Part shown: piece after piece, positions 12,696 through 58,054 of the stretch
Numbering within the stretch: position 1 is the stretch's first letter
Layout: every line of letters begins with the position of its first letter
From: Oculina patagonica
Taxonomy: Eukaryota
Length of the DNA: 64,000 nucleotides
NCBI RefSeq assembly: GCF_052425735.1
Contig: NC_135769.1
Coordinates: forward strand, 1 to 64,000
Direction: 5' to 3'
Position numbers and translations under genes: made by a program
The notes under the pieces: model-generated
What the model saw: the letters and a program-made list of their open reading frames with translations, nothing else
Database searches by the model: none
Told to the model about the DNA's origin: nothing

Positions 12696-12803
12696 TTATG
12701 AGTAGTGTAGTTGAATTGCAACCTGAAATGAGACTGGTCTCTAGCCGTGTCTAAATAGAGAACAGTCTTATTTCAGGTCACAATTCAACTATGCTACTCA
12801 TAA
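12696..12803. repeat. 108-bp palindrome (48-bp arms), probable MITE downstream of the LicD-like gene
   Basis: TTATGAGTAGTGTAGTTGAATTG...CAATTCAACTATGCTACTCATAA, with 6 mismatches between the arms. Confidence 0.8.
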
Positions 12804-12987
12804 GGAGTGGGAGGGTTGGAATTTAATTATGGTGCTTTTACAATGAACTATAAGAATTGGCTGTAAAAAACGGACTGTATAACATTTTTTTAACTTAAAT
12901 AGTAATAACTTTAAACTTTTTTCTGATAATTCTGTTAATTTAGAATTTAAAATACTAACTCTGTAAATTGTTCAAATGCCCTGGTGG

Positions 12988-14658
12988 TTAAGTTTCCACC
13001 CAAGATCCATTCTTGCACATCTTAGGTGGTTTAAAGTTGTCAGTCTTGAAGTAGGCTCGTAAAATTTCCCAAGGCCTGTTTGGACATGAAGTATTAAAGC
13101 CCATAAGAATGCATGGTCTAAATGGATAGAAATTGGACATCTTGTACTGCTTAAGCCTATTCTCACTCGGGTCTTCAATCAAGTCACCTTTTTCATAAAA
13201 ATGGAACATGTCAACAAAGACACTTCCTCTTATGAGTCTTGCCATGGGTTCTAGGAAGGAGCACATATCTGACATGGATGATGTCACCTGTCAATTTAAA
13301 CCAAGAAGAAAAAAATAAAATTAATGGTTAAAATTAATGGCGTAGTAATCAACCTCTTAAGCTCAAAAGTTTCAAGTGCCACTATAATCAAAATTTGGAC
13401 TCTCTGATTTAAACCATTTTAAAACATAAACAAATATAACGAACAACGGCGACAAACGATGCAATAGACCACATTTTTAGATTGGCCCAACAGACTATTA
13501 ACAGTTAGTTACAATATGGAGTAGAACCTTGCCGCCTTTAAGCTAGACATGTTGGTCAGGCATTTCAGTGTTCTCTTAAAGCACAGCTACAATGAGCGCC
13601 AAAAGTGTTGAGACAGTCGGCACTTTTTGAGTACCTTGGACAAATTTTACCCCTCACCCCTTCAATATAACCCCCTCCCCCCGAAACAATGTTGTATTTG
13701 CTATCAGCAAGACTTGCCTCCTTTGAGTTCAACATTGAAAAGGGGGGAGGGGGAGTGGTTTAGAAGTGGCAGCAGATTAAAGGTGAAAAAACAGGAATTT
13801 TTAATTAGTATCAATTTCATCCAACTGTCTCAAGGACTTTTGACACCCATTGTAGGTACGGTACATTTTGTATCAATAAAGGCATGAGGCATTTATTGCA
13901 ACATCCAGGAACTGTTTCGTTTTAATTCTTTTTATTTTTTTTTTTAAATGTGACCTAATTTTGTTTTGGATCAATCACTACTGATGATGTAAGACATAGC
14001 ATTTTAAAAACAAAAAATGACCTGTTATTTTTAAAATTGCATGTGTGCAATGTAAAATATTGACCTTCACAACTGAACTTTTGCTGAATTTCAAAGGCAC
14101 TTTCAGCAACCTTTTTTAAATTATCCAATTTTGAAGAAAAAAATTATAAGTACGAATAAATACCTCTCCTTGGCAGTTGTGTCGAGTTCGCTTTTCCTCT
14201 GGAATGTTCAACACAGGTCCAGGTTGAATTGCCAAACGGATTGTTCCATCTGCTTTTGTAAACTTTTTTTCTTCTGACCACTTTTTTAAAATTGGGAAAT
14301 ATTTTACATGGATGTTTATGTCAATGTCGTGATCCCAAGGTATGATATCTCTGTTTCGCATTGCTCCAAGAAGACTGCCGAATGCCAAAGTGTAACTTAT
14401 GTTATTTTCCTTACAGGCACTAGTCCAGGCTTGGAAAAGTGTGCATAAATCTTCTCGATTATGATTATCAGGACATCCTGGATCACCGTATACATTAGAT
14501 GTTGTATTCCCTTTACACCTCGGGAACTCTACGTTTTTCACCAAGTAAACACCGTAGCTAGTTAAATCTGGATTAATATAAAGCCACAGCCCCAACACTG
14601 AAACCAAGGTCAACACAAAACAAAAAAATAATCTCCAAGCCTGTGAAGCACTGCACAT
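12988..14658 (-). CDS. LicD/fukutin-related family phosphotransferase, type II membrane protein, ~264 aa, 2 coding exons
   Basis: Exons 14658-14164 and 13287-12988 joined by a phase-0 GT-AG intron. N-terminal TM segment LFFCFVLTLVSVLGLWLYI, LicD motif GSLLGAMRNRDIIPWDHDIDI, and C-terminal FVDMF...FYPFRPC...CPNRP..ILRAYF. Confidence 0.9.
13587..13855. mobile_element. MITE in the LicD-gene intron
   Basis: Imperfect TIRs CTACAATGAGCGCCAAAAGTGTTGAGACAGT ... ACTGTCTCAAGGACTTTTGACACCCATTGTAG. No clear TSD. Confidence 0.7.
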
Positions 14659-15778
14659 TGTTATCTGCAGGTGACTTAGCAGCTTGTTAGTTAACTGTCA
14701 ATAATGTTGTTAACCAGCCATCCAAGCATTTCTGTGATGCACAGGAAGATGGACTGGCTTCAACTGAAGGTTCCTAGGTTCAAAAAGTAGATGAAACAGT
14801 TAACCAGGTGTTACTTAAAAAACTTTAACATTTGCTATCCTTATTTTTAATATCTGCCATTCTCAAAATTATAGAAAAGAGCAGCATTCTTTAAAAATAT
14901 AAGCCTAGATTTCTTTTGCAAAGCTAAGAAAGTCCTGAGATCAAAGAAAAGTTAATTTTAGTCTTGCCATCTTGCAAAATTCTGAGTGCAAGTCAGCAGG
15001 TCTGCAGCATACATTTGTCGCCCACCTGATCTCCAGAGTTTAATTTTCCCTGGGTATGACATTTTTAAAAAATACTTGCATGGTATAACAAGAAATATTG
15101 ATTTTGTTTGTTTTTTGAAACCAATGTACCAAGGGAATACAAACTGACAATCCTACACACGTTTTCTGAAAACCAGTGATTTGGAACAATTATAGAAATA
15201 AGCTTAATATTTCAGGGTCACATTGTTCCCCTTGTAAAAATATGCAAAATGCACAACTCGTTGTTTTCAATCTATTCAGTCGAGTGGAGCATTCTTTAAA
15301 ATCTTTTCGTCGTATATACTGTCGTTGATACTGAACTGATTTGCAGTGAACTGTCGATGGAACTGAGTAGTTCTCAGCAGAAATCGAATCTCATTTCTTC
15401 ACTGTTCTTCATGAGCAGTCTAGATGAATCAGTAAGCTTAAACAATTTTTTTTCGCATATAGTAGAGAGGAGTTGTGTGCAGATTTAATCATTACCGTAA
15501 ACCGAAAAAATAAGACACTGAGAGAATAATGAAACGAAAACGTACCTTCCAACTCTGACAATCGAGCACTAAAGGCGAAATCAGTGATTTTCAAAGAGTT
15601 GTACAAAATGGCGATGATGGAAGCCGGTACATGCTGAATTTCACACTTTTCTCAAATGACAACCGGCTCGCTCGTCAGCGGTATCTGCATGTTATTGGTT
15701 AACGTTTTACCATGGAAACCACGTCTGCTTAGCAAGAATTCCCCGACCAGAGGGGTGCAATGAGAAAATGTGCCCAAT

Positions 15779-16567
15779 ATTTCCTCGCGAAGCGAGGCCG
15801 AAGGCCGAGCGTAGCGGGGTGTATAATTTTGTCCCTCAAAGGGATCAGGCGGGATGAAATCTCGTGTGGAGTTTACGGTCATATATATTTCTATATATAT
15901 TTGTGAGCTTGGTGTGTGGCGGAAATGACGTCACACGGCCGCCGCGCGCTGGTGGCCTAATGGTAAGGCGTCGAACTTGAAATCAGATCTTCGGACCTGA
16001 GGTCGGCGGTTCGAATCCGGCTAGGGTTTTTTTTTTTTTTTTTTTTTTTTTTTGTGAGTTCGAATCCTGAGCCTTTCATTTTTATCGTTTTTCTTTTCGG
16101 ATTAAAATAACATTGATTTCCACATAATACTCCCTCAACGCCTATTCAGGCTATAAACCTTTCATCGCCATCAGGGGTGGAGGCGCGCGGGTGGAGGCTT
16201 CGAATCCTCCTGCCGTTCGTTCTTCTTTTTTTTTTATGCCATCAAATAAATGTCCAAAATGCGACTATCCAATAATTTGTCGATGATTCTGAAAATAGCC
16301 TGCGCTTCCCAACGCTTTATACCTCTTTACGAACCAGAAAAAGCCACCATCTTTAAAGCGGAGTAGACCCTGGGAACGAGGGTGTCGCGGCCGTGCCCGT
16401 TGAAATAAATTTTCTAACAAATATATCTTCCTGCCTACTGTGGAAAATTGAATATGTACAATTCAATTAATGTTCAACTTCAAATAATCCACTCCTTATT
16501 TATAACACCCCCCCCCCCCCCCCAACCCAGAGCTTCGCGAGGCCTTGCGAGTCACGTATTACTAGTT
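15779..16567 (+). mobile_element. Putative non-autonomous Helentron (HINE/DINE-1-like) carrying tRNA-like sequence
   Basis: Subterminal inverted repeats CCTCGCGAAGC (15783-93) and GCTTCGCGAGG (16532-42), a 5' hairpin GGCCGAAGGCC, a TA-rich tract, a 3' end CTAG, and T-rich flanks. Confidence 0.55.
15946..16027 (+). pseudogene. tRNA-derived (Ser-UGA-like) pseudogene / SINE head
   Basis: A-box TGGCCTAATGG, anticodon loop CTTGAAA, B-box GGTTCGAATCC, followed by a long poly-T. The acceptor, anticodon and T stems are mismatched. Confidence 0.6.
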
Positions 16568-16734
16568 ATATATTTTTGAGGCAAATTCTCCTGCGAGTCT
16601 CACTTAAATTTTTAAGCATTTTTGTGGGTATTTCAAGTACAATTGACCCAATCAATTAATTTAGAAATCATTAAAAAGACCTTTTCCTCCTGCAGAGAAA
16701 TCCAGATTCTTGTCACGGCCAGCGCAATCAGCAC

Positions 16735-17340
16735 AACAAGCACAATCTTTATTTAGCGTGGTCCGCACACTTAGCTAAAAGGCTCGTTTTCAGATGCGCC
16801 ACGAAATAAAAATACAAAATAGATAAATAAAAACTTCTTGGAAGTGTATAAAAATAGATTAAGCTATAATTAAGAATAACTACAAATTACAATATTGTCT
16901 AACTAAGATTAAAAATATAAAAAATTTAAAATATTATTAAAAACAGTAAAGTAGCAATAATAAAAATTGACAAACTACTCGCTCAAAGTCCCGTAAGATT
17001 TAATGTTCTTAGGTTCGTTTTAAAAATGGTGTAAGTTTTTATTTTCCTTGTGTCGTCTGGTATAGAGTTCCACAGTTTCGATGCAGTATATCTCCACGAT
17101 TTGAGGCCATATTTTGATGAATTTACTTTCGGAAGGTCCACAAATGTGTTGCCTCTGAGGTTATAAGTGGAGCGTCTTGTTGTTATAAATTCACGCAAGC
17201 TTGCAGGACCGGCATCGCTAGCTAATATCTTAAAAACTGTCGACAATATTTTCGCTAAACGTTGTTCGCGGAGACTTGGGAGACCAATGCGCTTTAATAG
17301 TTCCTCATAAGGCGTGTCCTTTTCACAAAGGAGAGGAGAC
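16735..17340 (-). mobile_element. 3' fragment of a CR1/L2-group LINE
   Basis: ORF 16983-17342 ends with the typical YNLRG...LPKVNSSKYGLKSWRYTASKLWNSIP...FK tail, followed by an AT-rich 3' UTR with AATAAA. Confidence 0.8.
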
Positions 17341-18498
17341 ACATCAATAATAATATTACTAATTTATGAATTTATATTGCGCTTTTTAACATATAAATGA
17401 GCAAAAGCGCATTACAATATTAAACCTTAAAAATCCCTCACATCCCTCTAATCGCGGGCTATGTCGTCCGCCATCTTGGATTTCATTCGCAACATTCTGT
17501 TCATTCTGCCCCTGGGAGCAGAATGGATGGATTGGCGTTCTGTCCATTCTGAAATAGGAATGCGGAATATAAAAACGCGCGCATTTCACATTCTGGCCAT
17601 TAATTCTCATTCCAGAATTGTGAATAAAAAAGCGCGCCCTTTGTTTCTTTGGGAGCAAAGTATCCGTGTGATCTGAGATAAATAATCCAATTTTGGATTT
17701 TCCCAAAGAAACGCACCCTTAAGTAATGCCTTTTTTGATCAAAGATGATGATGTCACAAGTGAAAGAAAGGGCAACGTTCCTCAAGGCCGGTTTTGGTCC
17801 CACGGGAACAAATGGGTTCATCTTTGTGAGTTATTTGTGACATTTCAGTAACACCCGCTATCCTGATCAGCAAACAATTGTCAATGTAACTGAGGAAAAA
17901 AACTGTCGTTGGATTCACAATTAAAAGAATCCAAGACCTCGAGAAAAAGTTAGTGATGATGTCCACGATGATCACTTGACTGGCCTATTCGTCTTAATTT
18001 TCCAGCGGGTAAAATAGTAAGCGCAGATGTTATCTTGCTTTCTCAAGCTTCTCGCGACCTAAATAGCAGTTGACTTAGTTTTAACGAAGACCTGTGCTTC
18101 TGATCGCCCACCACAATTTCCCGCGAAAAGTATCAACGACCCGTGACAATTTCCTCCTGACCCACGATATTTTTACATACCTGTAATCAGGTAACCCAAG
18201 GATATTAGATACTCTTATGCTGCAAAAATGATCCTGCACCGCGCGCGAAAATCGGAACCACATAGCATAGCCACTGATCAATGGGGGAAAAATCTGCGGG
18301 CGCCAATGGACCGCTGAGATGCTGGGGAAAAAGAACCGCCATATTCGACAAGATGACAGCAACAGTACACAAAACAACTTTAATATATCACACATCATAC
18401 AGCTATATGCTGTCTTGAAGAGAGTTTAAGTCAAATCATTGTTCTTTACGCGCCTCATTTTCACAAACCTAAACCTCGCTAACTTATATTTATATTAA

Positions 18499-19083
18499 GC
18501 AATTATTGGATGAGGTTGAGCATGATGTCGTGAATTATCAAAACCGAGGTCTTGATAGTTCACGATATCATGCGAAAACCGAATTCAATAATTGTTTTAT
18601 TATACGTTTTCAAACAATTTGCCATCACTTTTTCTAGCGCCGGCGTAAAACTGGTCAGAACATTGGCCAAAGCGGTTTTATCTTGTGGTTCCTCCAGGTT
18701 CTTCTCCCTCAAATAATCATTCAGAATTTTTACACTTGTTTTTGTTGTTCTCTTTGTGTTTTAAGAATCTTTATTCTCGATCAAAACTTTCAATTCCTCT
18801 TCGAAAACGAAGGCGAATCGCTCGAGCTCAGCCATAATTTCAAAAGTTTGACAGCACTGCACGGACGAGGGGCTTGGAAACTAGGCGGACTTTGAACTCG
18901 ACATGATAACCCAATATCTGCTGCAGATATTGGGTTATCATGTCAAGTTCACATGCTACTGTGTATTGTCTGAATGCTCTCGACCAATCACATGTTTTGA
19001 AGTAGTTCTAATGTATAATAATTAACAATTATTGGATGAGGTTGTGATGTTAGCGTAATTTTGGTTTTTTTTTTCCGAAGCCG
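18499..19083. repeat. Dispersed repeat with internal inverted repeats; a second copy begins at ~19024 and runs into the gap
   Basis: CAATTATTGGATGAGGTTG at 18500 and 19026. Internal palindrome ACATGATAACCCAATATCTGCTGCAGATATTGGGTTATCATGT at ~18901-18943. Confidence 0.6.
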
Positions 19084-19354
19084 NNNNNNNNNNNNNNNNN
19101 NNNNNNNNNNNNNNNNNNNNNNNNNNNNNNNNNNNNNNNNNNNNNNNNNNNNNNNNNNNNNNNNNNNNNNNNNNNNNNNNNNNNNNNNNNNNNNNNNNNN
19201 NNNNNNNNNNNNNNNNNNNNNNNNNNNNNNNNNNNNNNNNNNNNNNNNNNNNNNNNNNNNNNNNNNNNNNNNNNNNNNNNNNNNNNTTTGATTCCAAGAG
19301 TTAACTGCTTATGATTTACATAGAATTTATATAAGAGCTGAACTGAAGTCTCTA

Positions 19355-20332
19355 CTAGTTGTTATTTTCTTCCCCGTATTTTAACAGTCGTACGATGTCT
19401 TCACATTTGAATTGCTCATCGTCATCAGCCAGTGTACCTTGAAGAAAAACTTCATCAACCTAAAAATATTGAAGAAAAGGAATCTAACAGTTAGGAAAAA
19501 CTTGCACAGGCGAGTAGGTTTGATCGATAGAGTGCGCGTCTATTCTTTAATTTGTATCCTGGAGGAGAATTTTTTCCTCCGAAACGTAATTAAGTTAAGG
19601 CTCAATATATAAAATGTTCCAACTTTTGTTGACGAATTTATTTATAGCGTGAAGAGACAGGCTATTATTACTGCCGCCCGGGACGGAGTGGCCTGGACCA
19701 ATAAAGTCAATTAATTACATCATCCTTTTTTAGTTGATAATTTCACCCGTTTATCTTTCTCCGGAGACAAGCAATAAGCCATAAAAATATATATAAAAGA
19801 TTTAGACATTGTCCTCAGTTACCGCTTTGCATTCAATCAGGAAAACGTTTGTAGTAAAGCTTTATAGCATCAGAATAATGCGTACCTGTTGCTCTGTAAG
19901 CCTCAGCCCCATCGTCATCAACAGTTCCTTGAACTCTTCCAGATTTATATATCCATCACAATCCTCGTCAAAACACGTGAAAGCATTTCTGATCAAGTCT
20001 TCTGGATCAGCGGCTCCCATCTTAGAAGCAAACATGGACAAAAACCTGGCAAAGTCCACACTCCCCGGCATGCCGACCTCGTTGAGCATATCTCTCAGCT
20101 CCGCATCAGTTGGTTTCTGCCCAAGAGAGATCAGAATTGTCTGCAGATCTTTCTTGCTTATTACTCCATCACGATCTTGATCAATAAGATTGAAAGCTTC
20201 CTTAAGCTGCTTCAATTGTTCTTTGTCAATGTGTACTGTCGCGTGAGGCTTCAAGCCTGTCCTTCTGGACTTTCGCCGCGGGAGAATCTTACTACCGTCT
20301 GTGTGATACATATTGACTTGCTTCAAATCCAT
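19355..20332 (-). CDS. Myosin regulatory light chain-like EF-hand protein, ~183 aa, 2 exons
   Basis: Exons 20332-19886 and 19459-19355 (phase 0). Motifs KEAFNLIDQDRDGVISKKDL, FLSMFASKMGAADPEDLIRNAF and C-terminal VDEVF...IVRLLKYGEE. Confidence 0.88.
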
Positions 20333-21081
20333 TGCCTTTGTCTCATAATCCAGCACGTGAAATAAAATATTGAAGAGCAGACAAAGTCATAACTGAGGGA
20401 TGCGTCTTAATTATATCTGTGGACAAATCACGGAAACCAACTCTGTGGTTAATTTGCCCGGCACATCTGTCTTGCTAAGAGCTGCGGTTTTAAGAAAGTG
20501 TATACTCAGTTGAAAGAAACCATAGATTAATTTGTCCTGAAATGTCATAAAGTTACTGTAACAATATATTATAATTACATTAGACAAACTAGCGGGAGTG
20601 GTGGTTTTGAATTAGTAAAGTATCACGCCATCTGGCTGATGGAGAATCAGGTCCGCCGGTGAAAACGACTGAACTCTTGTGGTTAACGTCGAAGTTGCTA
20701 TGATTACAGTTCTATAAAAGTACGTAAAATTCAACTGATCGAAATCAAATTAATCTTATGACAAATTTAAGATCTTGCTAATATATTTTTAATTAACTCT
20801 GTCCTGACCAGTTTTTTTAGTCTAGAAAGCCACATGGATGATATGGGCATGTATAAATGTATTTAAGAATGCTTAAAAACTAACACAGATTAATTTACAA
20901 AGATTGACTAGGCGATTAAGATAACTTCACTTGTTTTTTTTAGTTTGAAATTTGTGATCATGATAGCTTTTTTTTCTTTTCTGTGCGCAAGAGATCTGGA
21001 GCCAAATTAACTTTTCAAGACAGCGAAAGACTGGAGAGAGCGTGTTGGAACGCCTGGTAGATTTTGTCTTCCCCCGGTTTT

Positions 21082-24000
21082 ATGGCGGTCAAGTGTGATT
21101 TGGATGTTATCATTAAACTTGGAGGATGTGCAGTTACACGTAAAAATACATTCGAAACAGTTAATCATGACGCGATCGAATCAGCGGCGAAGTTGGTGAA
21201 AAAGATAAAGGGAAAGTGTATTGTGATTCATGGCGCGGGGTAAGTCGAAATGTCGACATCAGTTCATGGGGTCTGTATGTAGACTTTGTCGTCTAATCAA
21301 GTGTAACAGTATTTTCACTGCTTTAAGTAAAGACATCTTTTTTTCAAATGATTGACACGGTATATTCACAGTACAACACTAGTAATCAGTAAATCTGCTT
21401 TTGTTTAACTTTAAGGAACGTACTAAACCGTTGCTGCAATGGCGTTACTGCCGTGACACTTCAAGAGTAACGCAAGACAACACAACCTGTAATGAATTTG
21501 TTTTGAAGAAGACTTAATTGCAAAAAAAAACTTAGTTTATCTTAAACTGGGACTTACATAGTCCAAAAGGGGCTGGTATTTATGGGGAAGATATCTGCTA
21601 CCAAACATTATTTTTGGTTTTTTCAAATTTGTCATTCATTAAGCAAAATATTGCTTTGTTCCACTAGCCTTGAGTAGTTTCCTTAAGCTATGATCCAAGT
21701 CACATGTAAGTCATGATTAAAGTGATTCACAGTTGTTGTTGTGTACAGCACCTTTACTTTAGGGTCATGTGTGCTTTATATTAATCCTTTACATTGTCAT
21801 TGAACATTCTTGTTACTGTTATTGCAGATCATTTGGACACTTTCAGGCTCACGAGTACGGAACAGCTCATGGGTTCTCAAATGATGCCCTAAACAGTCGG
21901 ATTGGATTTGCAAAGACCAGACTTTCAGTTACAAAGGTATAGGGCGACTTGGTAAAAGTCTCATATTCTGTTATGCATGGTTAAAACTTCAAATGTCAGG
22001 ATTTCAAATAAGATATGTTAGTAGACGGCTCGGGGGTCTCCTCTACTTACTATGATGGTATCATTTTAAAGCCATTTTCACTGGAGTAAACTTGTGGCAA
22101 TCAGAAGTGAAACTAAAACCAATCGCGACTTTCTCACACATGTTTTCCTGTGCTTTGCACTGGCTACATGTAATTACTTCAACTTTTGATTGGTTCACTG
22201 AATTGTCCATGCCTTTTGTGATTGGCAACAGTAATAACTTTGGTTTTAGGTTTTACGACACTCAATTGAAAACTGCTCTATAGACCAGGGTAATTCCATA
22301 TTAGTCCTTGGTTAAGGTTGTTGTAATATCCCTAGGGATTCAGGAGAAGTCTTGTGATTCAAAGTTTTTTGCTGGTGCTTAATAGTGGGAATTGACAACA
22401 ATTTCATAGATCAGATGCTACGTTCACTGTAGGTTTAAATTCTGTTTTTACAAAATAATTCATTTCTTGCACATTCATGTAGCTTTTTATCTTTGTAAGA
22501 TCATTGAGACGAGTAACATTTTAATTAGTAGTAGCTGTTGTATAAATTATCTTTCTTTTTGTTCCTCTGTCATAGCTGCAACACACAATCACAGCGGCAT
22601 TTCTTGCCAATGGTATTCCAGCATTGGGAATTTCAGTAAGCATTATTATTCCTTCACAGGTGATCCTCACATGTTATGTAAGGATCTAAAAGAGATTGCT
22701 ATGGTATTGACCATTGTTTAATTTTTAACGTATGTGGCTATGTTGTGGTTTAAATTTTTCTTTCAATGGTTTAAATTTTTTTAAACCAGTTTGATGTTTA
22801 TTTTTCATTGTCTCATATTGATCATCATAATCTAAAACAAAGGGAAATAAAAATAAAACTGGTTTGAAAAATTCTAAACCAAAGATAAATTTAAACCACA
22901 ACAGCTATATACAAAAATAAAGGGGGGGGGGGGGGAGGGGGCTATACAATTTATACAATATGACTGACCACATTAATAATTAAGTGAGAGTGCAAAACAG
23001 TTTTTAAATTTTGTTTACCAGTAGTTTTAAGCAAATGGAAAATTGAAAAATAAAAGTAATCTTGATTATATATATAATTATGTCGCACCACTCCAGCTTG
23101 TTGACACATGGTCATGTTATTTGCTGCTTAAATTCCCTCTAATTATTAGTGCACACAAACGTGGCCTAACTCAGTCCCTTTTTGTAGATGGATCATGGAA
23201 TCAAAATGTACTAATAAGTTACCAATACTTGTTTTCCAAAATAAATTATTGATTTCTTTCCAAGCACAGTTGTTAATAGTCAAATAAGAATTAAATCAAT
23301 CTTTCACGTTTGGTACCAACTACTTTACTTTACTTTACTTTGTATGTGTAGCCCTGTGGATCATGGCTGACAAGTGGACGCACTGTCACCAGGTCAGCGG
23401 TAACTCCAATTGTTGAACTGTTAGAAGCTGGATTTGTACCAGTTCTGCATGGTGATTGCGTTTTGGATGAAGAACAGGGGTGTGCTATACTAAGTGGAGA
23501 CAAAATTATTGAGGTACATTACGTTGCTACGAGTTAAATAGTCTCCTAAATTAAAATAGAGAAAGGCCAATTTTGATTTATTAAAATTCTAACAAGGTAC
23601 AGAGGCTTAATGGATTAAAACGTCACATCTAAGTTACATCCCCTAATCCTTTGACATCATGTTAAAATTTTAATGCATCAAAATTGGCCCATTGCATTTA
23701 TCCATGGTTATGTTTTCATACATGTGAAGACTTGTCTCTTCGTTGAGTGCTGCAAATTCAAATGTAATGTGGCAGCATGTTTTTTTTTTCATGTACGGCA
23801 TGTAGTTTCCTTATGAATAAAAGTCGTCAGGTGATGAAAAGACTGTTTTAATTTTTCTGTTAGAAGCAAGCGTGGCCAAATGAAAGTGAACAAGTTTGAG
23901 TTAAGAAAATTGTTTAGGGATCTCGTGAATGATTGTCGAGGGCATTGCCGCTAAGATAATATGTCCAGTTATACATTGAATCCTTGTAAACATGGTTTGA

Positions 24001-41999: not shown

Positions 42000-42455
42000 T
42001 CACCTCCAGTAGGATATCTTTCGTCCCTTATTTTGGGAACGTTCTAGTCTTTTGAGATAGTCCTGCTTCTGTTTATTGTAGTAAAACTCTCCAGCGCCTT
42101 CTTTGATAAGTATAGCAGCACACTCTGTCTTGCCAGCTCGAATGGCTGTATGCATGGGTGGCCAACCAGATTGATCCAAAACGTTTATATCTGCGCCATT
42201 TTTAATTAGTTCTTTCAACAGTTTTGAGTTGCCATCCAAAACAACTTGATGAAGTTGTGGAAGTTGTGTTTCATGTTTTTCTTCGTCGCTCTTGCTGTTG
42301 CCTTCAGAGTGAACACTTGTGTTCGCTTCTTGATCGCTGTCCTCTTTCCCTTCTTCGTGTTCAACAATGTCCGTGAGCGCTCGTTTGCGAAACATTGTCA
42401 TCTTCTCTTCTGGCAAACTCAATTTACGACTTCGCTGCATGTTGATCGAGTTCAT
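42000..42455 (-). CDS. Small ankyrin-repeat protein (151 aa)
   Basis: LHQVVLDGNSKLLKELIKNGADINVLDQSGWPPMHTAIRAGKTECAAILIKEGA, with a low-complexity charged N-terminus. Confidence 0.8.
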   Translation of the reverse strand: MNSINMQRSRKLSLPEEKMTMFRKRALTDIVEHEEGKEDSDQEANTSVHSEGNSKSDEEKHETQLPQLHQVVLDGNSKLLKELIKNGADINVLDQSGWPPMHTAIRAGKTECAAILIKEGAGEFYYNKQKQDYLKRLERSQNKGRKISYWR

Positions 42456-44774: not shown

Positions 44775-47700
44775 ATGAATCGCGTAAAGCTAGTAAAGGC
44801 ATTTCTCATTGGTGTTCTTGCACTTGGACTTTGGGTTATATTAATCGTCGTTTATCTGTTTAGCCGTCAGGAAATCATCCCTAATGTGACGTCTTTTCAA
44901 AATCAACCCACATCTGGAATTGGGACAGTTGTTGAGCTGTTAGCAAGCCAGACAGATCATTTATACGACGAAGCCTTCGAGCTCGACGATACTTTCAAGG
45001 GTTTGAACAAACATACTTGGGAAAGGTACTGTCAGAGTAGCTTCGAACAACTATGTAATTATCCAATTTTTCCCAAAGCGCCAGATAAAAGAAATTATGT
45101 TCAAAGTGCTAACATCGTCTCCATGGCTGACAAACTTGAGGGCGCCGTGCGACTGCTGGGTTATGTTCGACCGAACACAACAGGAGAATTTCAATTCTTA
45201 GTGACATCGAATGGCTTTGCCGAACTTTGGCTCAGTCCGAATACCAACTGGAAGGATGCTAGGAAAATTGCTTATATCAAGTCGCTACAGAAAATGTCCT
45301 TTGAAGCAATTAAATCCCAGATTTCTGATACCGTGACATTATTAGGAAGACACAAGTACTATTTTGAGGTGATTTATGTTCAAAGCGATCATTCATTTAG
45401 CCGGGGCGAACAGTTAATTCAAGTCGCTTGGAAAAGACCAGATAAAAGTAGATTTGAACTTATTGATAGAGAGTTTTTCTCACTATACACAAAGGACAAT
45501 AAAAAAGATAAATTGAAAATCTACGACGAAGAATTGCCAGACGTCCTGGCTTGTAAACATTCAAGGAGAAGATTTGCAAACAAATACATGGGGCCAGAGA
45601 CGCTACCTTACATGGAAAACGCGGCAGTAGACAAGACGTTACCGCTCTGTGATTACAGACCAAGTTATGTTCTCGATCCTGCGAATTTGCCGCGTGACTT
45701 TAAACAGTATCACGGTGTGAAGCACGTTCAAAAAACGTATACGTACCCATTCCAAAGCGTAAGTGGAGTGATAAGGAGTACAAAAGTTGCGCGGTCAGTC
45801 AAGAAAACATTTCTAGCTGAATACCCCTTAAATGAAAAAGAAGCACTGTCCGTTATTCGCAAATACATCAACGCCGTGAAAAGGGCATATCCTGGGTAAG
45901 TGAATCCGAAACTTTTTTTTAACATTAAGCGTTCGTAGAGGATGGCCGCCATAGAAAAAAAAAAACACCGGAGACATACTAGAATTGTAGGAAGAGGTGT
46001 TAATATATAGTTTGTGTCTTTTTCCAGCTTTTCATGTTGCTAGTGATTCTAAATTGGTTATCAGAACTCGAGAGATCTCGGACAAATAGTATTGCGTGAA
46101 TTAGGTCAAATGTTCATTTCATCCCTCGTTCTCGGTTATTGAACCACGATCTTTGATGGTGCTATGAGAACACAATGTCAATCAATCAATCAATTGAAGC
46201 TCATCCCGTTACTACGGGAACCAGTGAGCAATGTTGTATATATATATTGAGGTCATCGTTTCTTTGCAGGAAATACGAACTTCAGTCCATTAACCGTGTC
46301 GAAAAGAAAGAAGATCCTCCTAAAGGCAGCAGATATCTACTTGAACTTGTAGTCAAAGATCTTACCAATGGCACGAGCTATATTTTGGCAGGATATGTAT
46401 TTCAACCGCGAGGTAAAGACAAGCCTCTGTGTTACCCGAAGGGCCTGCAATGGAACAGGACAGCGGATGTTTATCTTATTCTCACTTCCAAGAACCTGGG
46501 TCGATGGGTTCATCATTTCATTAAAAACGTAGAAGAGATCGTTCAAGAAACGAAAGATGAGCATTTACATGTGGTTATTTTTGACTTTGATAGTCCTGAT
46601 ATTGATTTAGAACAGGCTTTCAAAAGAAGCACTCTGAAGAACTACCATTTTATCACACAGCCTGGGAACTATTCTCGCACAGTTTCTTTCAGTAGGGCAG
46701 TGGAATCAATAAAGGACCCGGAAGCCATTATTGTCACCATAGACATGCATCTGGATCTTGGAAGCCAGCTAATTAACGACATTCGTAAGGTAAGTAGTGA
46801 GGATGAGGGGGAGGTGGAGGGGAAGTGGATGGGAGAGGGGGTGGGGAACAATATCCGGGACAGAAAGGCTACTAAAGGAAGCAGCAAGCTTAGAATGATT
46901 TTTTGTATCAGAATTATCGTGTACGTCATAGAGAACCCTATAATTACTGTTTGCTTCTTGTTGAACAATTTACACTGGTAACATAAATAATTGTTTTAAC
47001 CCAGGCATATGAATAGTTTATCTACTGTCATTCGGGTAAGGGTAAATAAATTAGCTGTTGTTGGTGACTAACGTTTTGACAATTTGCCGGTTATCAAGTA
47101 AATAGTTTTAACTCAGTCGATGATCTTTGAAACCAACCCAGGAACTAATCGGCTAGCTTCGCCGTGATGTCATTTGCTGTTAGTTTCATGTAAAGTTTGC
47201 GGCAACACTGTTCACTAATTATATTAAAGGTATTTCTGTCTATTGCCAAGTAGTTTGGAGTTCCTTAAACTAGACGTTGAGTGGAGTAATTTTTTATCAT
47301 CAAGTATTCTACGGTGACAAACGTTGGGTGGCCATACGGAGAATTTAAAACCTAACTTCCACGGGTGCAAATTTCCTCTCGGTCAAAGTGTGTATAGGTC
47401 ACCGCAACAGCTTGGGTCCACTTCCCACTCCGTTTTCAGGGCTATGGACATCATCATTAGACTTTCACAGTTTTGATATTTTTTATTTCTATTTTTAGCA
47501 TTGCATTAAAGGAAAAACACTCTACGCTCCTCAAATAATTTATCTAAACTGTGACGGGAGCAGTGCTATCCCCAGCGGCCACTGGTACCACTACAGTTAT
47601 GGAACAGTAGCAGTGTACAAAGAAGATTGGGAGAAATTCGGAGGATTTTCAAAGAATTTCGTCAATAAGGTCACCTGGGGAGGCGAGGACTGGGATATAA

Positions 47701-47846
47701 TTGACGGCGCAGTCAAGGGAGGTCTGGAAATAGAACGAAAACGTTCCCCAGCGGTCTACCATTATTATCACACTAAAGCGGGAATGTGGCAGAAAGCAAA
47801 GAAGGCCACTAAAGCGGGAGTATCACAAGAAGCAAAGAAATCGTAG
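44775..47846 (+). CDS. Beta-1,4-N-acetylgalactosaminyltransferase 3/4-like (PA14 + GT7), ~662 aa, 3 exons
   Basis: Exons 44775-45895, 46270-46789 and 47499-47846 join in frame. N-terminal TM segment, PA14-like GAVRLLGYVRP..GEFQF...GFAELWLS, and DMH and WGGEDWD motifs. Confidence 0.9.
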
Positions 47847-48499
47847 ATGGAACTCCTTATCCTTAATATTATAACTTCAGCTTGTTAGATGATTAAAGTG
47901 CAGTGGACATACCATTAGGGACAGCGCGTCTCCTGCACACTTGGATAAATTGTTGTCGAAAGAAAAAGAAAGAAAAATAGATGACCTAAAGTATGAAGAT
48001 AAGTGGAGTCAAATCTTGGGAGAACTATTCAGCCTAAACTGGAGCGCTATTTAGGCTAACTTTTTCCCAACAAGAGCGCTGTACTACTCGTTCCCATTGC
48101 CTTCTGAGCATGAGAGACGCGCAGTACCAGTCACTAATGGCTTTGTACAGTGGAACCCTTTACTCCACTAAGATCTGATCGTATTAATGGGTTGATCCGT
48201 CGAACTAAATAAGGTTATTATCGGTCTTAAATACGGAAATAGCTGACTGAAATTGCCTTTGAGTCAAACTGAAAGTGGCTGAAGTAACAAAGTGGCAGGC
48301 GTAAGGCGGGATCTTAATGTACTTATTCCTATTACCTTCGTTGAGATATAAAAGGCTTGTGAGATGAGTTAAAAGTGCGCTCTAGCTATAGATTCGTGTC
48401 CTTTAGCGTGTACAGCTCGCAGCGTCATTCTATTGGGTCTTCTCAACCTACTTACCTTTTTAACTTACTTAATGCTTTCTAAGTCGGTTGTACTTACTT

Positions 48500-49230
48500 T
48501 TTTTTAAAAATAATGCAACTTTATTTACACGCAGCACTAATTACATAGGTACTACAGATGAAAAAGATAAATACATATTTACAACGGGCTATTTACAAGA
48601 GACGTAATTTTTACATGAACACTTTCAAAAGGAAAAAAAATAATTGTTAATTATAAGGATAACTAATTATGACTACTTCTAAAATATAATTCTTACTTAC
48701 AATACAACGCTAGAGTACAGTACATTACGCTAATTACATTAATACAACGAGACACATTTTAAATAATTACTTACTAACTTGAAATACATAGCTTATTTGT
48801 ACAACGGTTCCTATATTATTTTACATCTTTGATTACTGACACTTCGTCCCTAATAGCTTACAATACAAAACACTATTCACACTACGTTACTTACTTACTT
48901 ACTCACACCCCCTACACGAATGAACAACAACAACAACACCAACAACAAAGAGAAGACAGCACCGATGAGTGATTTTTTAAAATCTCCAAAAATAAAATGG
49001 GCGAGTTTATTTGCACGTAAGGCGATGTACTTTTCGAGATCTATTTTTTCTCGCACGTAGACGACAAAATCCGCAAATTGATATTTTTTGTCATTTTTAG
49101 CGCAGATGAACAGGAAAAACTTGCCAACGAGTATAAGGTGGTTGATGGTTTGAAGCGAAGATGAGCCTTTTAAGACGCCATATAATATTTCGTTTTCTGT
49201 CAAGGTTGTATTACTTGCGTGTAAAATTTA
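48500..49230 (-). mobile_element. 3' fragment of an L1/Tx1-group LINE
   Basis: ILYG...INHLILVGKFFLFIC...EKYIA resembles the Tx1-type ORF2 C-terminus. A long AT-rich tail follows. Confidence 0.6.
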
Positions 49231-49777
49231 TCGTTCAAACAAGAGATTATATATTCAATAGTTAGCACCGTCCCCTGCAGTCTCGTCCACGCAGTTTTTA
49301 TGCAAAGGTTAAAAAAGTTTTAGACAAGAGTCGACTAGAAACGAGTCGGGTGCCGTCCCACTGCTGTGTTTGTTATTGATTGATTTGTCATGCGTAGGTT
49401 GTCTTTGTAGCATTGTCATTGTCACAGGGATCGCAGACCTCTTGAGTGATTGCCTTATACTTATGTTCGTCGTGTGATCAAGATTTTATCAGTTGATTAA
49501 TGATTATTAACTATTTATTATAACGTCTGCATTTAATAGGTTAAGTACCATAAAGGGTTTTTCGATATATAAAACAATTCACTTTGTGAAATTTTTTTAA
49601 TAAATGGGTTTAAATAAAAAGATGAGAAAACGGTTCTTTTTAGTCCCGAATCTTTGTTCGTCGCGTGGCGTTAAAAAAGTGTTTCCCATGTCATTTAGCG
49701 AGCGGTCAAAGCAATTATACTACTGCGTTGTAACGTAAAGATGCTGAACCGAAGAATCCTCACACCATCTTAAGACG

Positions 49778-49877
49778 TAGACTGTCCACAGCCTCTCGAT
49801 TTTTCAACGCAAAAAAGCAAACGAAGCGGTCATCGATCGAAAAAAACACGAAAAAATAGAGGGCTGTGGACAGTCTA
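49778..49877. mobile_element. 100-bp MITE with TAG..CTA termini and a 9-bp TSD
   Basis: CTTAAGACG|TAGACTGTCCACAGCC ... GGCTGTGGACAGTCTA|CTTAAGACG. Confidence 0.9.
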
Positions 49878-50642
49878 CTTAAGACGCCGAGACAGAAGCA
49901 TTCTCCTTGCTGTTTGACGATAGCTTAAATTGCCACCTAACACCTACCAAAAAAATTTCTATGAAATTCAGACATCAACCAGACAAATCGTCATCTTTTC
50001 TTCGTCGTCAATTTTCGATTCGCCCCAGTCTCTCCGAAAAATCTGAGCCACTTTTGAACTGGATTGGCGGTTAAAAAAACTGATTCCCCCCTTTCCCCCC
50101 CCCCCCCCCCTGTGGAAATCATTATTATTTTCGCCAGCCGACTTATGTTTTCGTAAGTTTGACCGTCTCTGGAGAATTAAAGAAGAGTTTTGGCAGACAC
50201 GCCTTCGAGATGACATTCTTTTTATATCATTTGTGTTGGTACCATCGTACATGACATTAAACAGTATCGCATAAGCTGGCGCTTCCCATTTCTTGGTATG
50301 ACTAACAGATTGGCTTTCAAATGAAATGAACGATGCTTTTAGAGAAATATTTGATAATGTGTTGTTTTTTGCTTTAGAGACAACTGAAATCAGAACATGG
50401 TTTATCGATTGAACTCGGTGTAGCGCATTGTATCGATCACCTCTGTAGGGAATTAAATAAAAATAATTGGACATGTAGGGATAAACGAAACAGAGACCGT
50501 CCCATGTCCGCCTGAAGAGGACAATAGAGGCACATTTCCACATGGGAAGTTGAGGACTCACCATTTCTACCGACCCTTTAGAAGGTTCACGGCTTGCAAA
50601 GAACCGAGCAGAAATGGAGCGACCTATGTGTCTTAGAATTAT

Positions 50643-50700: not shown

Positions 50701-51215
50701 TATGTTGGTTAATACAACTTCATCCTTCAAACGAGCACGATTCATCACTATACCTATAGCGCGTCAAACATTCGCGCCAAGTATGAATAAAACAAAGGGA
50801 AGAAGGAAGATATACCTTAGACTGCATTTATTAGTAGGTACTAAAATCATACACACAAAAATGCATTGTTGGAGTTTTAAACGGAAGGTTATTTTATATT
50901 ATGACGACTTCATTTTTTATGAATACGTATTTTTTAAATCTTGGTACGTTTATCTATCTGTAGCCAAACTAGGACATTTAATCAATTTTTTATTAAATAA
51001 AAACGGAGATGGCCTGATTTTTCAAATATGGCAACCCTGAGCTTTAGGCGATGGCGAAGAGCTTGTCTTGTTACGAAAAATTTACATGCAATATAGGAAG
51101 TGTTGGCAGTGATTTTTTTGTATTTATGGAATAAGTTTATTATTTGTCGTGAGGGTGCAACAGGCCTTTGGTAACAACTCGGAGTATATATGGTTAAATC
51201 CATCACTTGTGCCAG

Positions 51216-51509
51216 TCACCACATTCCTGCTTTAGTGTGATAATAATGGTACACCCATGGGGAACGTTTCCGCTCTATTTCTAGGCCACTCCGTACCGCG
51301 TTATCAATTATATCCCAGTCCTCGCCTCCCCACGTGACTTTGTTTTCGAAGCCGTCTGAAAATCCTCCGAATTTCTCCCAGTCTCCTTTGTACATAGCTA
51401 CTGTTCCATAGCTATAGTGGTACCAGAGTCCTCTGGGAAGGGCACTGCTCCCACCGCAATTTAGAAACACAATTTGAGGAGCATATACTGTCTTTCCTTT
51501 ACAACAGTG
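51216..51509 (-). CDS. Last exon of a second, convergent B4GALNT3/4-like paralog (upstream exons not visible; probably in the gap)
   Basis: Acceptor ...TTCCCAG|CAC TGT TGT AAA GGA. HCCKGKTVYAPQI...WGGEDWDIID...YHYYHTKAGMW* closely matches exon 3 of the + strand gene. Confidence 0.8.
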   Translation of the reverse strand, partial: HCCKGKTVYAPQIVFLNCGGSSALPRGLWYHYSYGTVAMYKGDWEKFGGFSDGFENKVTWGGEDWDIIDNAVRSGLEIERKRSPWVYHYYHTKAGMW

Positions 51510-51792
51510 CTGGGAAGAAAGAAAGGAAAAATGAAAAAAAAAGCATGCCACTGAAATATCTAGTTTAGCAAATAGTCGATGAAATAAATTAGAATCACTA
51601 TAGAAAAAAAAACACGAGAAAAGATTCAGAAATCTTAAATAGTGTAGTCCAAGCCTTTAAGAAAAGAAGTCAGAAATCAACGCAAGTTAGTATATATCCT
51701 GCTTTGAATTAGTGACTTGCGCTAAATATTTGATCGAACTAAAATTCTCACAGAAGTGCACGTGGATGCAAGATTATCTAACACAGGTCCAG

Positions 51793-52393
51793 GTCTTGTT
51801 GTTGATATTAAGTATTGTCGAGTAGAATGGTAACTCTCTCCTTACCTTGCGTTTGTCTTGTTGTTGTTATAAGTATTGTCGATAGAATGGTAACTCTCTC
51901 CTTACCTTGCGTATGTCTTGTTGTTGATATTAGTATTGTCGAGTAGAATGGTAACTCTCTCCTTACCTTGCGTATGTCTTGTTATTGATATAAGTATTGT
52001 CGAGTAGAATGGTAACTCTCTCCTTACCTTGCGTATGTCTTGTTGTTGATATAAGTATTGTCGAGTAGAATGGTAACTCTCTCGTTACCTTGCGTATGTC
52101 TTGTTGTTTATTTATTTTAATTTCTCTTACCTTGCGTATGTCTTGTTGTTGATATTAGTATTGTCGAGTAGAATGGTAACTCTCTCCTTACCTTGCGTAT
52201 GTCTTGTTGTTGATATTAGTATTGTCGAGTAGAATGGTAACTCTCTCCTTACCTTGCGTATGTCTTGTTGTTGATATTAGTATTGTCGAGTAGAATGGTA
52301 ACTCTCTCCTTACCTTGCGTATGTCTTGTTGTTGATATTAGTATTGTCGAGTAGAATGGTAACTCTCTCCTTACCTTGCGTATGTCTTGTTGT
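51793..52393 (-). repeat. 61-bp tandem array (10 copies up to the gap) made of an exon end plus its splice donor
   Basis: Unit (-): ACAACAAGACATACGCAAG|GTAAGGAGAGAGTTACCATTCTACTCGACAATACTAATATCA. Donors at ~51841, 51901, 51962, 52023, 52084, 52126, 52187, 52248, 52309 and 52370. Confidence 0.9.
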
Positions 52394-52899
52394 NNNNNNN
52401 NNNNNNNNNNNNNNNNNNNNNNNNNNNNNNNNNNNNNNNNNNNNNNNNNNNNNNNNNNNNNNNNNNNNNNNNNNNNNNNNNNNNNNNNNNNNNNNNNNNN
52501 NNNNNNNNNNNNNNNNNNNNNNNNNNNNNNNNNNNNNNNNNNNNNNNNNNNNNNNNNNNNNNNNNNNNNNNNNNNNNNNNNNNNNNNNNNNNNNNNNNNN
52601 NNNNNNNNNNNNNNNNNNNNNNNNNNNNNNNNNNNNNNNNNNNNNNNNNNNNNNNNNNNNNNNNNNNNNNNNNNNNNNNNNNNNNNNNNNNNNNNNNNNN
52701 NNNNNNNNNNNNNNNNNNNNNNNNNNNNNNNNNNNNNNNNNNNNNNNNNNNNNNNNNNNNNNNNNNNNNNNNNNNNNNNNNNNNNNNNNNNNNNNNNNNN
52801 NNNNNNNNNNNNNNNNNNNNNNNNNNNNNNNNNNNNNNNNNNNNNNNNNNNNNNNNNNNNNNNNNNNNNNNNNNNNNNNNNNNNNNNNNNNNNCTTTGC

Positions 52900-53721
52900 C
52901 AGTGGCGTAGCCAGGGGAGGGTTCCAGGGGTTCCGGAACCCCCCTTCAGGATATCGCAATAGCTAATTCAAGAGAAAAAATATTATTAGAACCCCCCTTT
53001 AATTCCGCCAGATTAGAAAAATGAAATTTTTGAGAAAATAAAATGAAATCTATAAAGTATCACCTTGTGTTTACAATTACAAAATTTCGTGTATACAAGC
53101 CTGCGTTGTACGTGTAGTGCGGATCAAGACCTACCAAACAGTGCAGTTCAGGCCTTGGCAGAATGTGACAGCGATTTTTATCCAAATGTGCACAAGTTGC
53201 TGCGCATCTTGTGTACGTTGCCAATTACTTCTGCAGAATGTGAGCGATCGTTCAGCACATTGCGCAGACTAAAGACATACCTGCGGGCTACAATGACCAG
53301 CGAGCGAGAGTCAGGACTTGCTCTTATGAACATACATTACAACAGACAAATTGATATTAGTGCAACAGTCGACATTTTTGCACGGAAGCATCCACGGCGC
53401 CTACTTCTGGCTGATATACTAGCTGACTAGTGAGTGACGGTACGCCGGGAGTGAATGGTACGCCGGAAAAATTACCTGGTACGCGGGATTTTAAGCTTCC
53501 CTTCTAAGAAATGCTAGCTTCAATTGACGCTAAAATTGCTAAAAATTTATGCTTAGAATCAAGGAGATGCCATTTCTGGGGACCGCAAATTTCAAACTTT
53601 CCCGGGGGAGCATGCCCCCGGACCCCCCTAGAGGAGGAGCGCCTCCGGCGCTCAGTTTTACCTTCACAAATACAATTCACATTTGGAACCCCCCTATACA
53701 AAAATCCTGGCTACGCCCCTG
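52900..53721 (+). mobile_element. Internally deleted hAT transposon retaining the C-terminal dimerisation domain; 5-bp TSD
   Basis: TIRs CAGTGGCGTAGCCAGG / CCTGGCTACGCCCCTG with TTTGC on both sides. ORF 53065-53430 contains YPNVHKLLRILCTLPITSAECERSFSTLRRLKTYLRATM...GLALMNIH. Confidence 0.9.
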
Positions 53722-56332: not shown

Positions 56333-58054
56333 ATGACAGGGAAGTCGGTGATTCTGTAAGCTAAAGGCTGGGGCAGTTTTATATTCATAGAAAATTTGTG
56401 ATAATCTTGATTAGGGCGATATGGTTTAGATTTTTAACAGAATTAAAAATAAAAGTTCTTAAAGGGTACACTGTCTTTCTTCCTTTCAAGGGAGCGGGAA
56501 CGCGAAAGGGGAAAGATTGCAGAGGACGAACTACCAAGAACCGGAAGTGCTAGACGAGCCAAAGAAATGTTTGAAACTCAACCTCAGGAAACTGAGAAGG
56601 ACACTCCGGTTGATTTACAGATACTGTCTGGCGTCACTAAAGCAAGTATGAAGAAGTATCAAGAAAACCAAGCTTCAAAAACTTCACAGCAACGAGATCT
56701 TGAGGGTCTTGAAGAGATCCAAGGGGGAATAGCCGCCTCGCACAGAGACGCCTTCGAGAAAGGTAAAGCGAGCAACGTAGAGAGGAAGAGAGAAGACGAG
56801 GAAGAGGAACATTTACCAACCGCAGGCATTGCATCAAAGACGCGCGCCAGCATCGAATCTGGTAAAGTTATCCACGCTGAAGACAGACACGTGCGCGAGA
56901 CAGACCTCGCCGAAGAAATGCCCTCAGCCGGTGCCGCCTCTTCCGTACGGCGTAGATTTGAGCAGAAAAACGACGAAGGCAAGGCAGAGAGGCGCTTGAG
57001 CTATGAACCAGAGAAAGGCGAGGCTAAAGCGCGGACGGCGATGTACATGCAAAGTTTAGAGGATTCATCCCGTAAGAAACAGTCCCAGGACGAAGAAGAT
57101 GCCCTTCCACCGGCTGGTAGCGCACGTGGGGTCAGGCAAATGTTTGAGCAGGATAAAGTTATACACGCCGAGTCAAATCTTCAAGATTCCTGGAAAGAAG
57201 AACTTCCGCCATCTGGAGTCGCGCAAGCAACTAAAGAAGCACTAAAAGCAGCTGCTGCCAAAGGCTATGAAAAATCGCAAGTCGAGGACGAGGCTCTTAG
57301 TCCTGGCAAGGCGTCGGCCACCAGGAGTCGATACGAGAGGGGAGAATTTGAAGACCAGAAGACCATCGAGCGGGAGGAACCCATCGTGTCACCTGGTCAA
57401 ACCAAGGAACAACTCAAACACTACCAGGAAGCAGCACAGAACCAAGGCCCGAGAAGACGAACCATGGACAACGAACGAGAGGAGCTGGAAGCTGCCCGCG
57501 GTGTAGCCCTTGCAGTAAAATCAAGCTACGAGAAGGAAGGAGCGCCCCATAAAGAAATCAAAAGGACCATCTCAGATGAAGATTTCACGGGCGTCCAAGG
57601 TCGTGCCAAGGAAACAACCCGAGAAATCGAGTCAGGTGCTCTCATCAAACAAGCTCCAAAGATGGTGGAAACTGAGGACTTTGGTGTGACCCAGGGAGTC
57701 ACAAAGCAAACAACACAGCAAATAGAAAAAGGCGAATTGATTAAACAGGCGCCCAAAATGGTGGACGAGGAAGATTTCTCAGGCGTGTCCGGTCGTGCTA
57801 AGGAAACGACGAAGCAGATTGAGAAAGGCGAGTTGATCAAAGAAGCACACAAGATGGTGGAAGACGAAGATTTCTCAGGAGTTTCAGGTGTTGTCAAGGG
57901 AACAAGAGAGCGTATCGATAGCGGAGAGATGGTGAAACAAGCTCCGGTAGGAAATTCTGACCAAGGCGACTTAATGGGGATTCAGTCTGTGACGAGTAAC
58001 CGTGCTGTGTTTGATCAAAATGGACTGGACTCTAATTCTGTCCACGCAGAATAA
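56333..58054 (+). CDS. Acidic repeat protein with Xin-like (P..G.A...R..FE) putative actin-binding repeats, ~528 aa
   Basis: The main exon 56491-58054 follows acceptor CCTTTCAAG and is open upstream of the ORF-track Met. A phase-compatible first exon is 56333-56355 (ATGACAGGGAAGTCGGTGATTCT|GTAAGC). The product is inferred from motif resemblance. Confidence 0.75.

Follow-up and report, generated by a model that had tools for sequence, protein, structure and literature searches.

How does a gene handle a 5' splice site that appears to be followed by at least 10 copies of itself, and do these copies affect the protein it encodes? The question is raised by the first 64 kb of scaffold C12 in the 529-Mb assembly of the coral Oculina patagonica, the stretch of 64,000 nucleotides that we analyzed and call the window. 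On its minus strand, a tandem array of donor sites stands upstream of the last exon of a glycosyltransferase gene and adjoins an assembly gap. We consider it probable, at roughly 75%, that the array is an intronic minisatellite, with a first monomer that spans the exon 2/intron 2 boundary of a functional gene and downstream copies that are largely silent. This reading is carried by the array anatomy, independent sequence data, coding constraint, transcription, and one exon 2-exon 3 junction at the authentic donor. Its limit is that the authentic donor lies inside the window gap and that the anatomy of the first unit comes from another assembly (GCA_044670265.1).

The donor array and the origin of its unit

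Tandem Repeats Finder reported a period of 61 with 95 to 100% matches across 51793-52393. With the minus-strand unit start GACA[T/A]ACGCAAG|GTAA as an anchor, which is present in 10/10 units (the vertical bar marks the exon-intron boundary), ten units were counted, eight of them 61 bp long, as a sequence-only reading of this DNA had proposed in describing at least 10 tandem donors. Such head-to-tail units of 10 to 100 bp within an intron are characteristic of boundary-spanning minisatellites. Each unit carries one copy of a 5' splice site, or pseudo-donor; GACATACGCAAG|GTAAG is present in the array units, with GTAAC in one unit. Among the donor 9-mers, AAG|GTAAGG occurs eight times, and AAG|GTAAGA and AAG|GTAACG occur once each. 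There are six distinct unit variants in the window array, and a 42-nt variant unit carries A/T-rich filler. The last 4.4 units are 100% identical to each other. On the gap side the array, of at least 10 units, meets a run of 500 N, which was kept as is. At the other end the array stops after ...CAACAACAAGAC and is followed by 283 nt of unique intron. The acceptor of the last exon is 336 nt from the last donor and 865 nt from the first assembled donor. Telomere repeats at the scaffold end, which were sought as an explanation for repeat instability, were not found.

The 61-bp unit occurs nowhere else in the assembly besides the window array and C1069, an unplaced 522-bp contig of the same genome that is made wholly of the unit and includes a GTTGCC variant absent from the window array. 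Every assembly breaks inside the array (at the window gap, the end of contig L015 described below, and C1069), and short-read contigs collapse it. An independent DNA run, X17, includes intron and intergenic sequence and departs from the window at many positions; one of its contigs stops at 51810, the array edge, and the depth is 88 on perfect units versus about 22 on the flanks, an excess of about 4-fold. The variant units, L015, C1069, and the contig break in X17 show that the array is real and no assembly artifact.

We searched for relatives of the array boundary by a word search with exon 2 of the neighboring plus-strand gene alone, which returned 107 exon-level relatives. P0059 is the sole one that reads past ...LINDIRK into an array-like peptide (VRRDLPF... 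versus VRRELPF...), and an array-type intron start was found in P0059 only among these 107. A quick tree of the 107 relatives, built for orthologs and for the age of the array, placed P0059 in an unresolved polytomy, and no date was obtained. The contig that carries P0059 is L015 (5,492 bp; JADOBR010053586.1 of GCA_044670265.1), which we used for the anatomy of the upstream edge only. It contains, in this order, an ankyrin ORF, a PA14 exon 1, exon 2, a 77-nt first unit, and 61-nt units to the contig end, the latter identical to window units. Exon 2 ends with CTG ATT AAC GAC ATA CGC AAG|GTAAGG (...LINDIRK|GTAAGG) and is followed by at least five donors. From this exon 2 edge and the first unit, it follows that the unit joins the final 12 nt of exon 2 (GACATACGCAAG) to the initial 49 nt of intron 2. 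Authentic donor and pseudo-donors are identical from -12 to +11 in L015, and 8/10 donors in the window have the same AAG|GTAAGG. A first unit that contains the exon end and the authentic donor was therefore found in the homologous contig L015, the window edge falling in the N gap.

The same boundary exists as a single copy in the plus-strand gene, where the counterpart AAC GAC ATT CGT AAG|GTAAGT at 46775-46795 is a real donor according to RNA contigs in two runs. The unit matches this boundary at 20/24 positions (GACATTCGTAAG|GTAAGTAGTGAG versus GACATACGCAAG|GTAAGGAGAGAG). Together with the L015 edge, this bears out the earlier proposal of an amplified exon 2/intron 2 boundary with a strong 5' splice site, and the array also lies where that reading had placed it, at the matching position upstream of the last exon, 336 to 865 nt from the RNA-confirmed acceptor at 51510/51509. 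The 61-bp segment was probably amplified head to tail by replication slippage or unequal exchange.

The suggestion that a microhomology could have seeded slippage held in part. The true exon end in L015 reads TTAAC-GACATACGCAAG, and therefore exon and intron share only GAC (loosely AAC..GAC) where units join and not the full ACAACAAGAC, which belongs to the repeat itself. The letters preceding GACATACGCAAG are CTGATTAAC in the exon context and ATCAACAACAA in the repeat context, and the sequence at the donor end is ...CTGATTAACGACATACGCAAG in the exon context versus ...CAACAACAAGACATACGCAAG in the repeat context.

A tandem repeat at the 5' end of the same intron was also seen in a second lineage. 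In the exon-2 relatives P0019 and P0020 from other assemblies, the intron after the same ...IRK donor opens with a T-rich short tandem repeat (read-through FILFYFILFY...), and the donor itself is uncopied there.

The host gene and its plus-strand paralog

As judged from sequence, the host gene is a paralog of the plus-strand gene for a PA14 + CHGN, B4GALNT3/4-like (GT7) glycosyltransferase (Table 1). Protein searches were done exon by exon. Exon 1 of the plus-strand gene matches PF07691 (PA14; E = 9.3e-09) and has a hydrophobic N terminus; exon 1 of the paralog in L015 has a weak PA14 match. The last exon of the paralog matches PF02709 (E = 1.2e-10) and PF05679 (E = 1.5e-10), and its nearest solved structures are those of chondroitin sulfate synthase 3 (PDB match, E = 1.6e-05). 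PA14 in the N-terminal half and a C-terminal CHGN/Glyco_transf_7C region were thus both found for the paralog. The hydrophobic N-terminal anchor, PA14, and the C-terminal CHGN/Glyco_transf_7C region with WGGEDWD resemble enzymes of the B4GALNT3/B4GALNT4 type; unlike these, the coral genes are part of a large expansion specific to corals, to judge by at least 32 exon-2 matches in the genome.

Table 1. Features of the window at and around the donor array
Feature	Positions	Strand	Remarks
Plus-strand neighbor exon 1, signal anchor + PA14	44775..45895	+	Donor TGG|GTAAGT inferred from frame and GT-AG only
Plus-strand gene exon 2, ends AAC GAC ATT CGT AAG|GTAAGT	46270..46789	+	RNA joint in X1 and X2; counterpart of the array boundary, in single copy
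Plus-strand gene last coding exon (exon 3), CHGN/Glyco_transf_7C	47499..47846	+	Acceptor by RNA joint
Paralog 3' UTR, minimum extent	50912..51215	-	Set by RNA contig ends: X1 record 2 = 50912-51511, X2 record 19 = 50815-51453
Paralog last coding exon	51216..51509	-	97 codons + TGA; C-terminal part of CHGN/Glyco_transf_7C catalytic domain, WGGEDWD
Paralog intron 2, unique 3' part	51510..51792	-	Pyrimidine tract + AG acceptor at 51511-51510; aligns to plus-strand gene
Splice-donor minisatellite, 10 assembled units	51793..52393	-	8 x 61 nt, 1 x 60, 1 x 42
Assembly gap, 500 N	52394..52893	.	Adjoins array; paralog authentic donor, exon 2, and exon 1 absent from assembled letters

The two genes are convergent, with about 3.4 kb from stop to stop, and are mutual closest relatives in the family, the next-best match being 50 to 55% identical. 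The paralog last exon and plus-strand exon 3 share 82% protein and 80% DNA identity, and the similarity continues through the acceptor tract. Intron 2 of the plus-strand gene (joint 46789 to 47499, GT..AG) is spliced out in contigs of runs X1 and X2, with zero depth within the intron; therefore, X1 and X2 are RNA.

A tblastn search of the window found no paralog-type exon 1 or exon 2, nor did searches of the whole assembly, and their absence is most simply explained by the assembly gap. Transcription of the paralog is recorded in X1 record 2, an 884-nt contig with a depth of 36.6 (the depth of the neighboring gene is 19.6). It lies on 50912-51511, continues with 50 unplaced nucleotides, and then lies on the opposite strand at 46504-46737. 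Over these 234 nt it is 89% like plus-strand exon 2, with 25 mismatches, and L015 differs at 27 of the same 234. The record thus diverges from plus-strand exon 2 as L015 does and is therefore the mRNA of the paralog. L015 and the plus-strand gene differ at 11 of the next 52 positions, which explains why 50 letters remained unplaced at the 90% identity threshold used for placing contig letters. The contig piece ends at 51511 and confirms the paralog acceptor at 51510/51509. The 192-residue fragment that the X1 contig can encode was not among the 107 exon-2 relatives.

All three exons of the paralog have open frames, exons 1 and 2 being read from L015. The dN/dS values (Nei-Gojobori) between the paralog and the plus-strand gene are 0.12 for exon 3 (window versus window) and 0.14 for each of exons 1 and 2 (window versus L015). 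The paralog is a functional, transcribed, and spliced gene.

Several further observations concern the gene family and its surroundings. PA14 + CHGN genes have at least 32 exon-2 and at least 34 exon-1 matches genome-wide, with clusters on C11 (21.28-21.32 Mb), C12 (12.6-12.76 Mb), C4 (48.8 and 58.7 Mb), C8 (5.9 Mb), and C3 (23.65 Mb). The similarity between the two paralogs is much higher in exons 2 and 3 (83% amino acid identity, dS 0.66-0.90) than in exon 1 (47%; dS about 3.4, at saturation), with similar dN/dS (window exons 44775-45895, 46270-46789, and 47499-47846; L015 2924-4030); this could reflect a chimeric origin or gene conversion across the 3' half. An ankyrin-repeat ORF lies about 2.3 kb upstream of exon 1 in both cases (window 42000-42455, minus strand; L015 111-584, plus strand; 52% identity over 77 amino acids). 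Its orientation is away from the glycosyltransferase in the window and the same as that of the glycosyltransferase in L015; the duplicated block therefore took in the neighbor, and one copy was inverted later.

Just past the gap, at 53065-53430 on the plus strand, there is an ORF with a hAT-family C-terminal dimerization domain (PF05699, E = 1.4e-15), a transposon remnant. Nothing on the far side of the window gap corresponds to the L015 sequence that precedes the array. Between the two genes, 49600-49999 is a very high-copy element with a summed contig depth of 9,000 to 23,000 in X17 and 1,000 to 3,000 in X1 and X2, and many loose contig ends at 49777-49878. A 718-nt segment with GT..AG ends (48486-49203) is skipped by contigs of DNA run X17 and of run X2 and is probably an insertion/deletion polymorphism in the 3' flank of the plus-strand gene, not an intron. 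At 56567-58054 on the plus strand, an open frame of 495 amino acids contains many charged residues and internal repeats (…EDFSGVSG…KQIEKGELIK…); it had no match in Pfam.

Donor use and competing readings

The donor used in X1 record 2 can be read from its length. The 50 unplaced letters and the shared AG make 52 nt, which exactly equals the remaining distance to the exon 2 end in the plus-strand gene and also in L015; the two are colinear in exon 2 over 173 codons. Therefore, the authentic donor was joined in frame to the acceptor at 51510/51509 with no 61-nt unit in between. This is the sole paralog junction recovered, from one assembled contig of run X1, and it uses the authentic, most upstream donor; contigs drop rare isoforms. 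No reads of the raw polyA run X23 fell on the coding part of either gene. The RNA fold of three units was no better than that of shuffled sequences (z = -0.36), and no structural masking of donors was seen.

We translated the array and exon 3 separately to predict the products of later donors. Exon 2 ends on a complete codon. In-frame read-through meets a TAA across the second donor in L015, with its 77-nt first unit, and across the third donor in window-type 61-nt units. If splicing occurs before that stop, exon 3 is read with an offset of 2 or 1 and stops after 2 or 15 codons, respectively. Every later donor seen is thus predicted to lead to a premature stop before the WGGEDWD exon with no in-frame peptide added, so that the array could only lower output. 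Of the two effects that the sequence-only reading had expected from later donors, the wrecked frame stands, and the addition of a repeat-encoded peptide is excluded for the units seen, none of which is in frame.

In the reading we favor, an authentic donor would be followed by at least 10 copies of itself, and the downstream copies would be largely silent pseudo-donors that are lost when the intron is excised, as is the case at human F7 IVS7. The array would be a neutral or slightly deleterious by-product of repeat instability and not a regulatory device. Any use of a pseudo-donor would give a product truncated before the catalytic C-terminal exon.

Alternatively, the downstream donors could act as decoys that take a meaningful share of transcripts into truncated or nonsense-mediated decay-targeted mRNAs, the array length setting the amount of active enzyme. 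We regard this as unlikely. The pseudo-donors, identical to the authentic site, are strong, with 7 contiguous pairs to the 5' end of U1; that every later donor is truncating also suits this alternative. X1 has a depth of 12 to 65 on the array bins versus 0 on the unique intron at 51600-51799, which would fit mRNAs that contain repeat units but would fit equally a low background multiplied by copy number (the X1 background is about 2.6 at 50147-50332). As holes in contig depth prove nothing and rare variants are dropped from contigs, some pseudo-donor use in X1 is possible. However, the only recovered junction is the authentic one, in a record with a greater depth than the neighboring gene (36.6 versus 19.6), and there is no sign of length polymorphism or of a link to expression. 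Published cases point both ways: human IFI6 and CBS use two pseudo-sites besides the authentic one, but the pseudo-sites of F7, LMNB2, and PDGFA are silent (PMC1557585). The earlier proposal that donor choice tunes or switches off the enzyme is accordingly unsupported. It is more improbable still that the array length varies among colonies and sets the fraction of decoy-spliced, truncated, inactive product, which would make the array a heritable, fast-mutating dial on one member of the glycosyltransferase family.

A positive role for the reiterated U1-binding sites, by which recruited U1 snRNP would speed splicing or suppress premature cleavage and polyadenylation, is very improbable. The one ground for it is that U1 acts in splicing and in the suppression of premature cleavage and polyadenylation. 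Against it, there is no conservation outside the lineage, as P0059 alone among the 107 exon-2 relatives has the intron start, and the RNA fold gave no structure signal (z = -0.36).

The minus-strand copy is hardly to be taken as the dead 3' fragment of an inverted partial duplication with the array as decaying junk. This was first prompted by the absence of paralog exons 1 and 2 from the window and the assembled genome, and it is ruled out by the RNA contig, which joins a paralog-type exon 2 to the last exon, and by L015, in which exons 1 and 2 stand intact ahead of this array; it is thus contradicted for the sampled colonies, and the dN/dS of 0.12 to 0.14 also speaks against it. An untranscribed paralog, which the sequence-only reading had named as fatal to its case, is not what the RNA contig records.

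Least credible, and already contradicted, is a gap-filling or polishing loop, the other weakness foreseen in that reading together with a single true copy, since what would suit it (the adjoining 500-N gap and the 100% identity of the last 4.4 units) is outweighed by six unit variants that such a loop would not produce (with the 42-nt unit, the 60-nt unit, and point variants inside the window array), by exon 2 and at least five donors in the independent assembly L015, by further variants in C1069, and by the break of X17 at the array edge with about 4-fold depth on the unit.

Comparison with known boundary-spanning minisatellites

The locus carries a caution for annotation: three assemblies broke in the array, and with two of its exons hidden by it, an expressed gene has the appearance of a pseudogene fragment in the present assembly. 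It also offers a natural experiment outside vertebrates, in which at least 10 strong, near-identical donors compete for one acceptor. We found no report of a boundary-spanning donor array outside vertebrates in the literature searched, which is no proof of absence.

The best-studied parallel is human F7 IVS7, where a 37-bp unit (4 nt of exon and 33 nt of intron) is present in 5 to 9 copies; the most upstream site alone is used, and the pseudo-sites become functional once the first is mutated (Borensztajn et al. 2006, PMC1557585). In LMNB2 and PDGFA, only the authentic donor is used, while in IFI6 (6-16) and CBS the two nearest pseudo-sites are used too, constitutively (PMC1557585). The coral array resembles F7 IVS7 in its first monomer spanning the exon-intron boundary, in identical pseudo-donors after the authentic donor, and, as far as one RNA contig shows, in the most upstream site being the one seen in mRNA. 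The F7 donor, however, is weak (UGG|gugggu), and for F7 there are proof of length polymorphism and mutagenesis experiments (PMC1557585), whereas the coral array has a 61-bp unit (12 + 49 nt), at least 10 copies, a strong donor (AAG|GTAAGG), and a cnidarian host, with donor use known from one contig. IFI6 (6-16) intron 2 and CBS IVS13 likewise have the donor reiterated in an intronic minisatellite of many copies (25 pseudo-sites and 15 to 20 repeats, respectively) (PMC1557585), but in the coral the authentic junction is the only one recovered, and the protein would be truncated by inclusion of any further unit. LMNB2 (100 bp, 10 to 15 copies) and PDGFA intron 4 (81 bp, 16 to 18 copies) are similarly boundary spanning with only the authentic donor used (PMC1557585), and they differ in their longer units, unrelated genes, and phylum.

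The coral locus has the structure of an F7 IVS7-type minisatellite, and its single observed junction agrees with the F7 pattern. This is a known phenomenon and no new mechanism, here in a cnidarian and with a stronger donor, and it is a clean natural test case. If junction counts show use of the first donor alone, the rule of human F7 that the most upstream site wins holds in a cnidarian too, and a rule shared by the two would argue for an old property of the splicing machinery.
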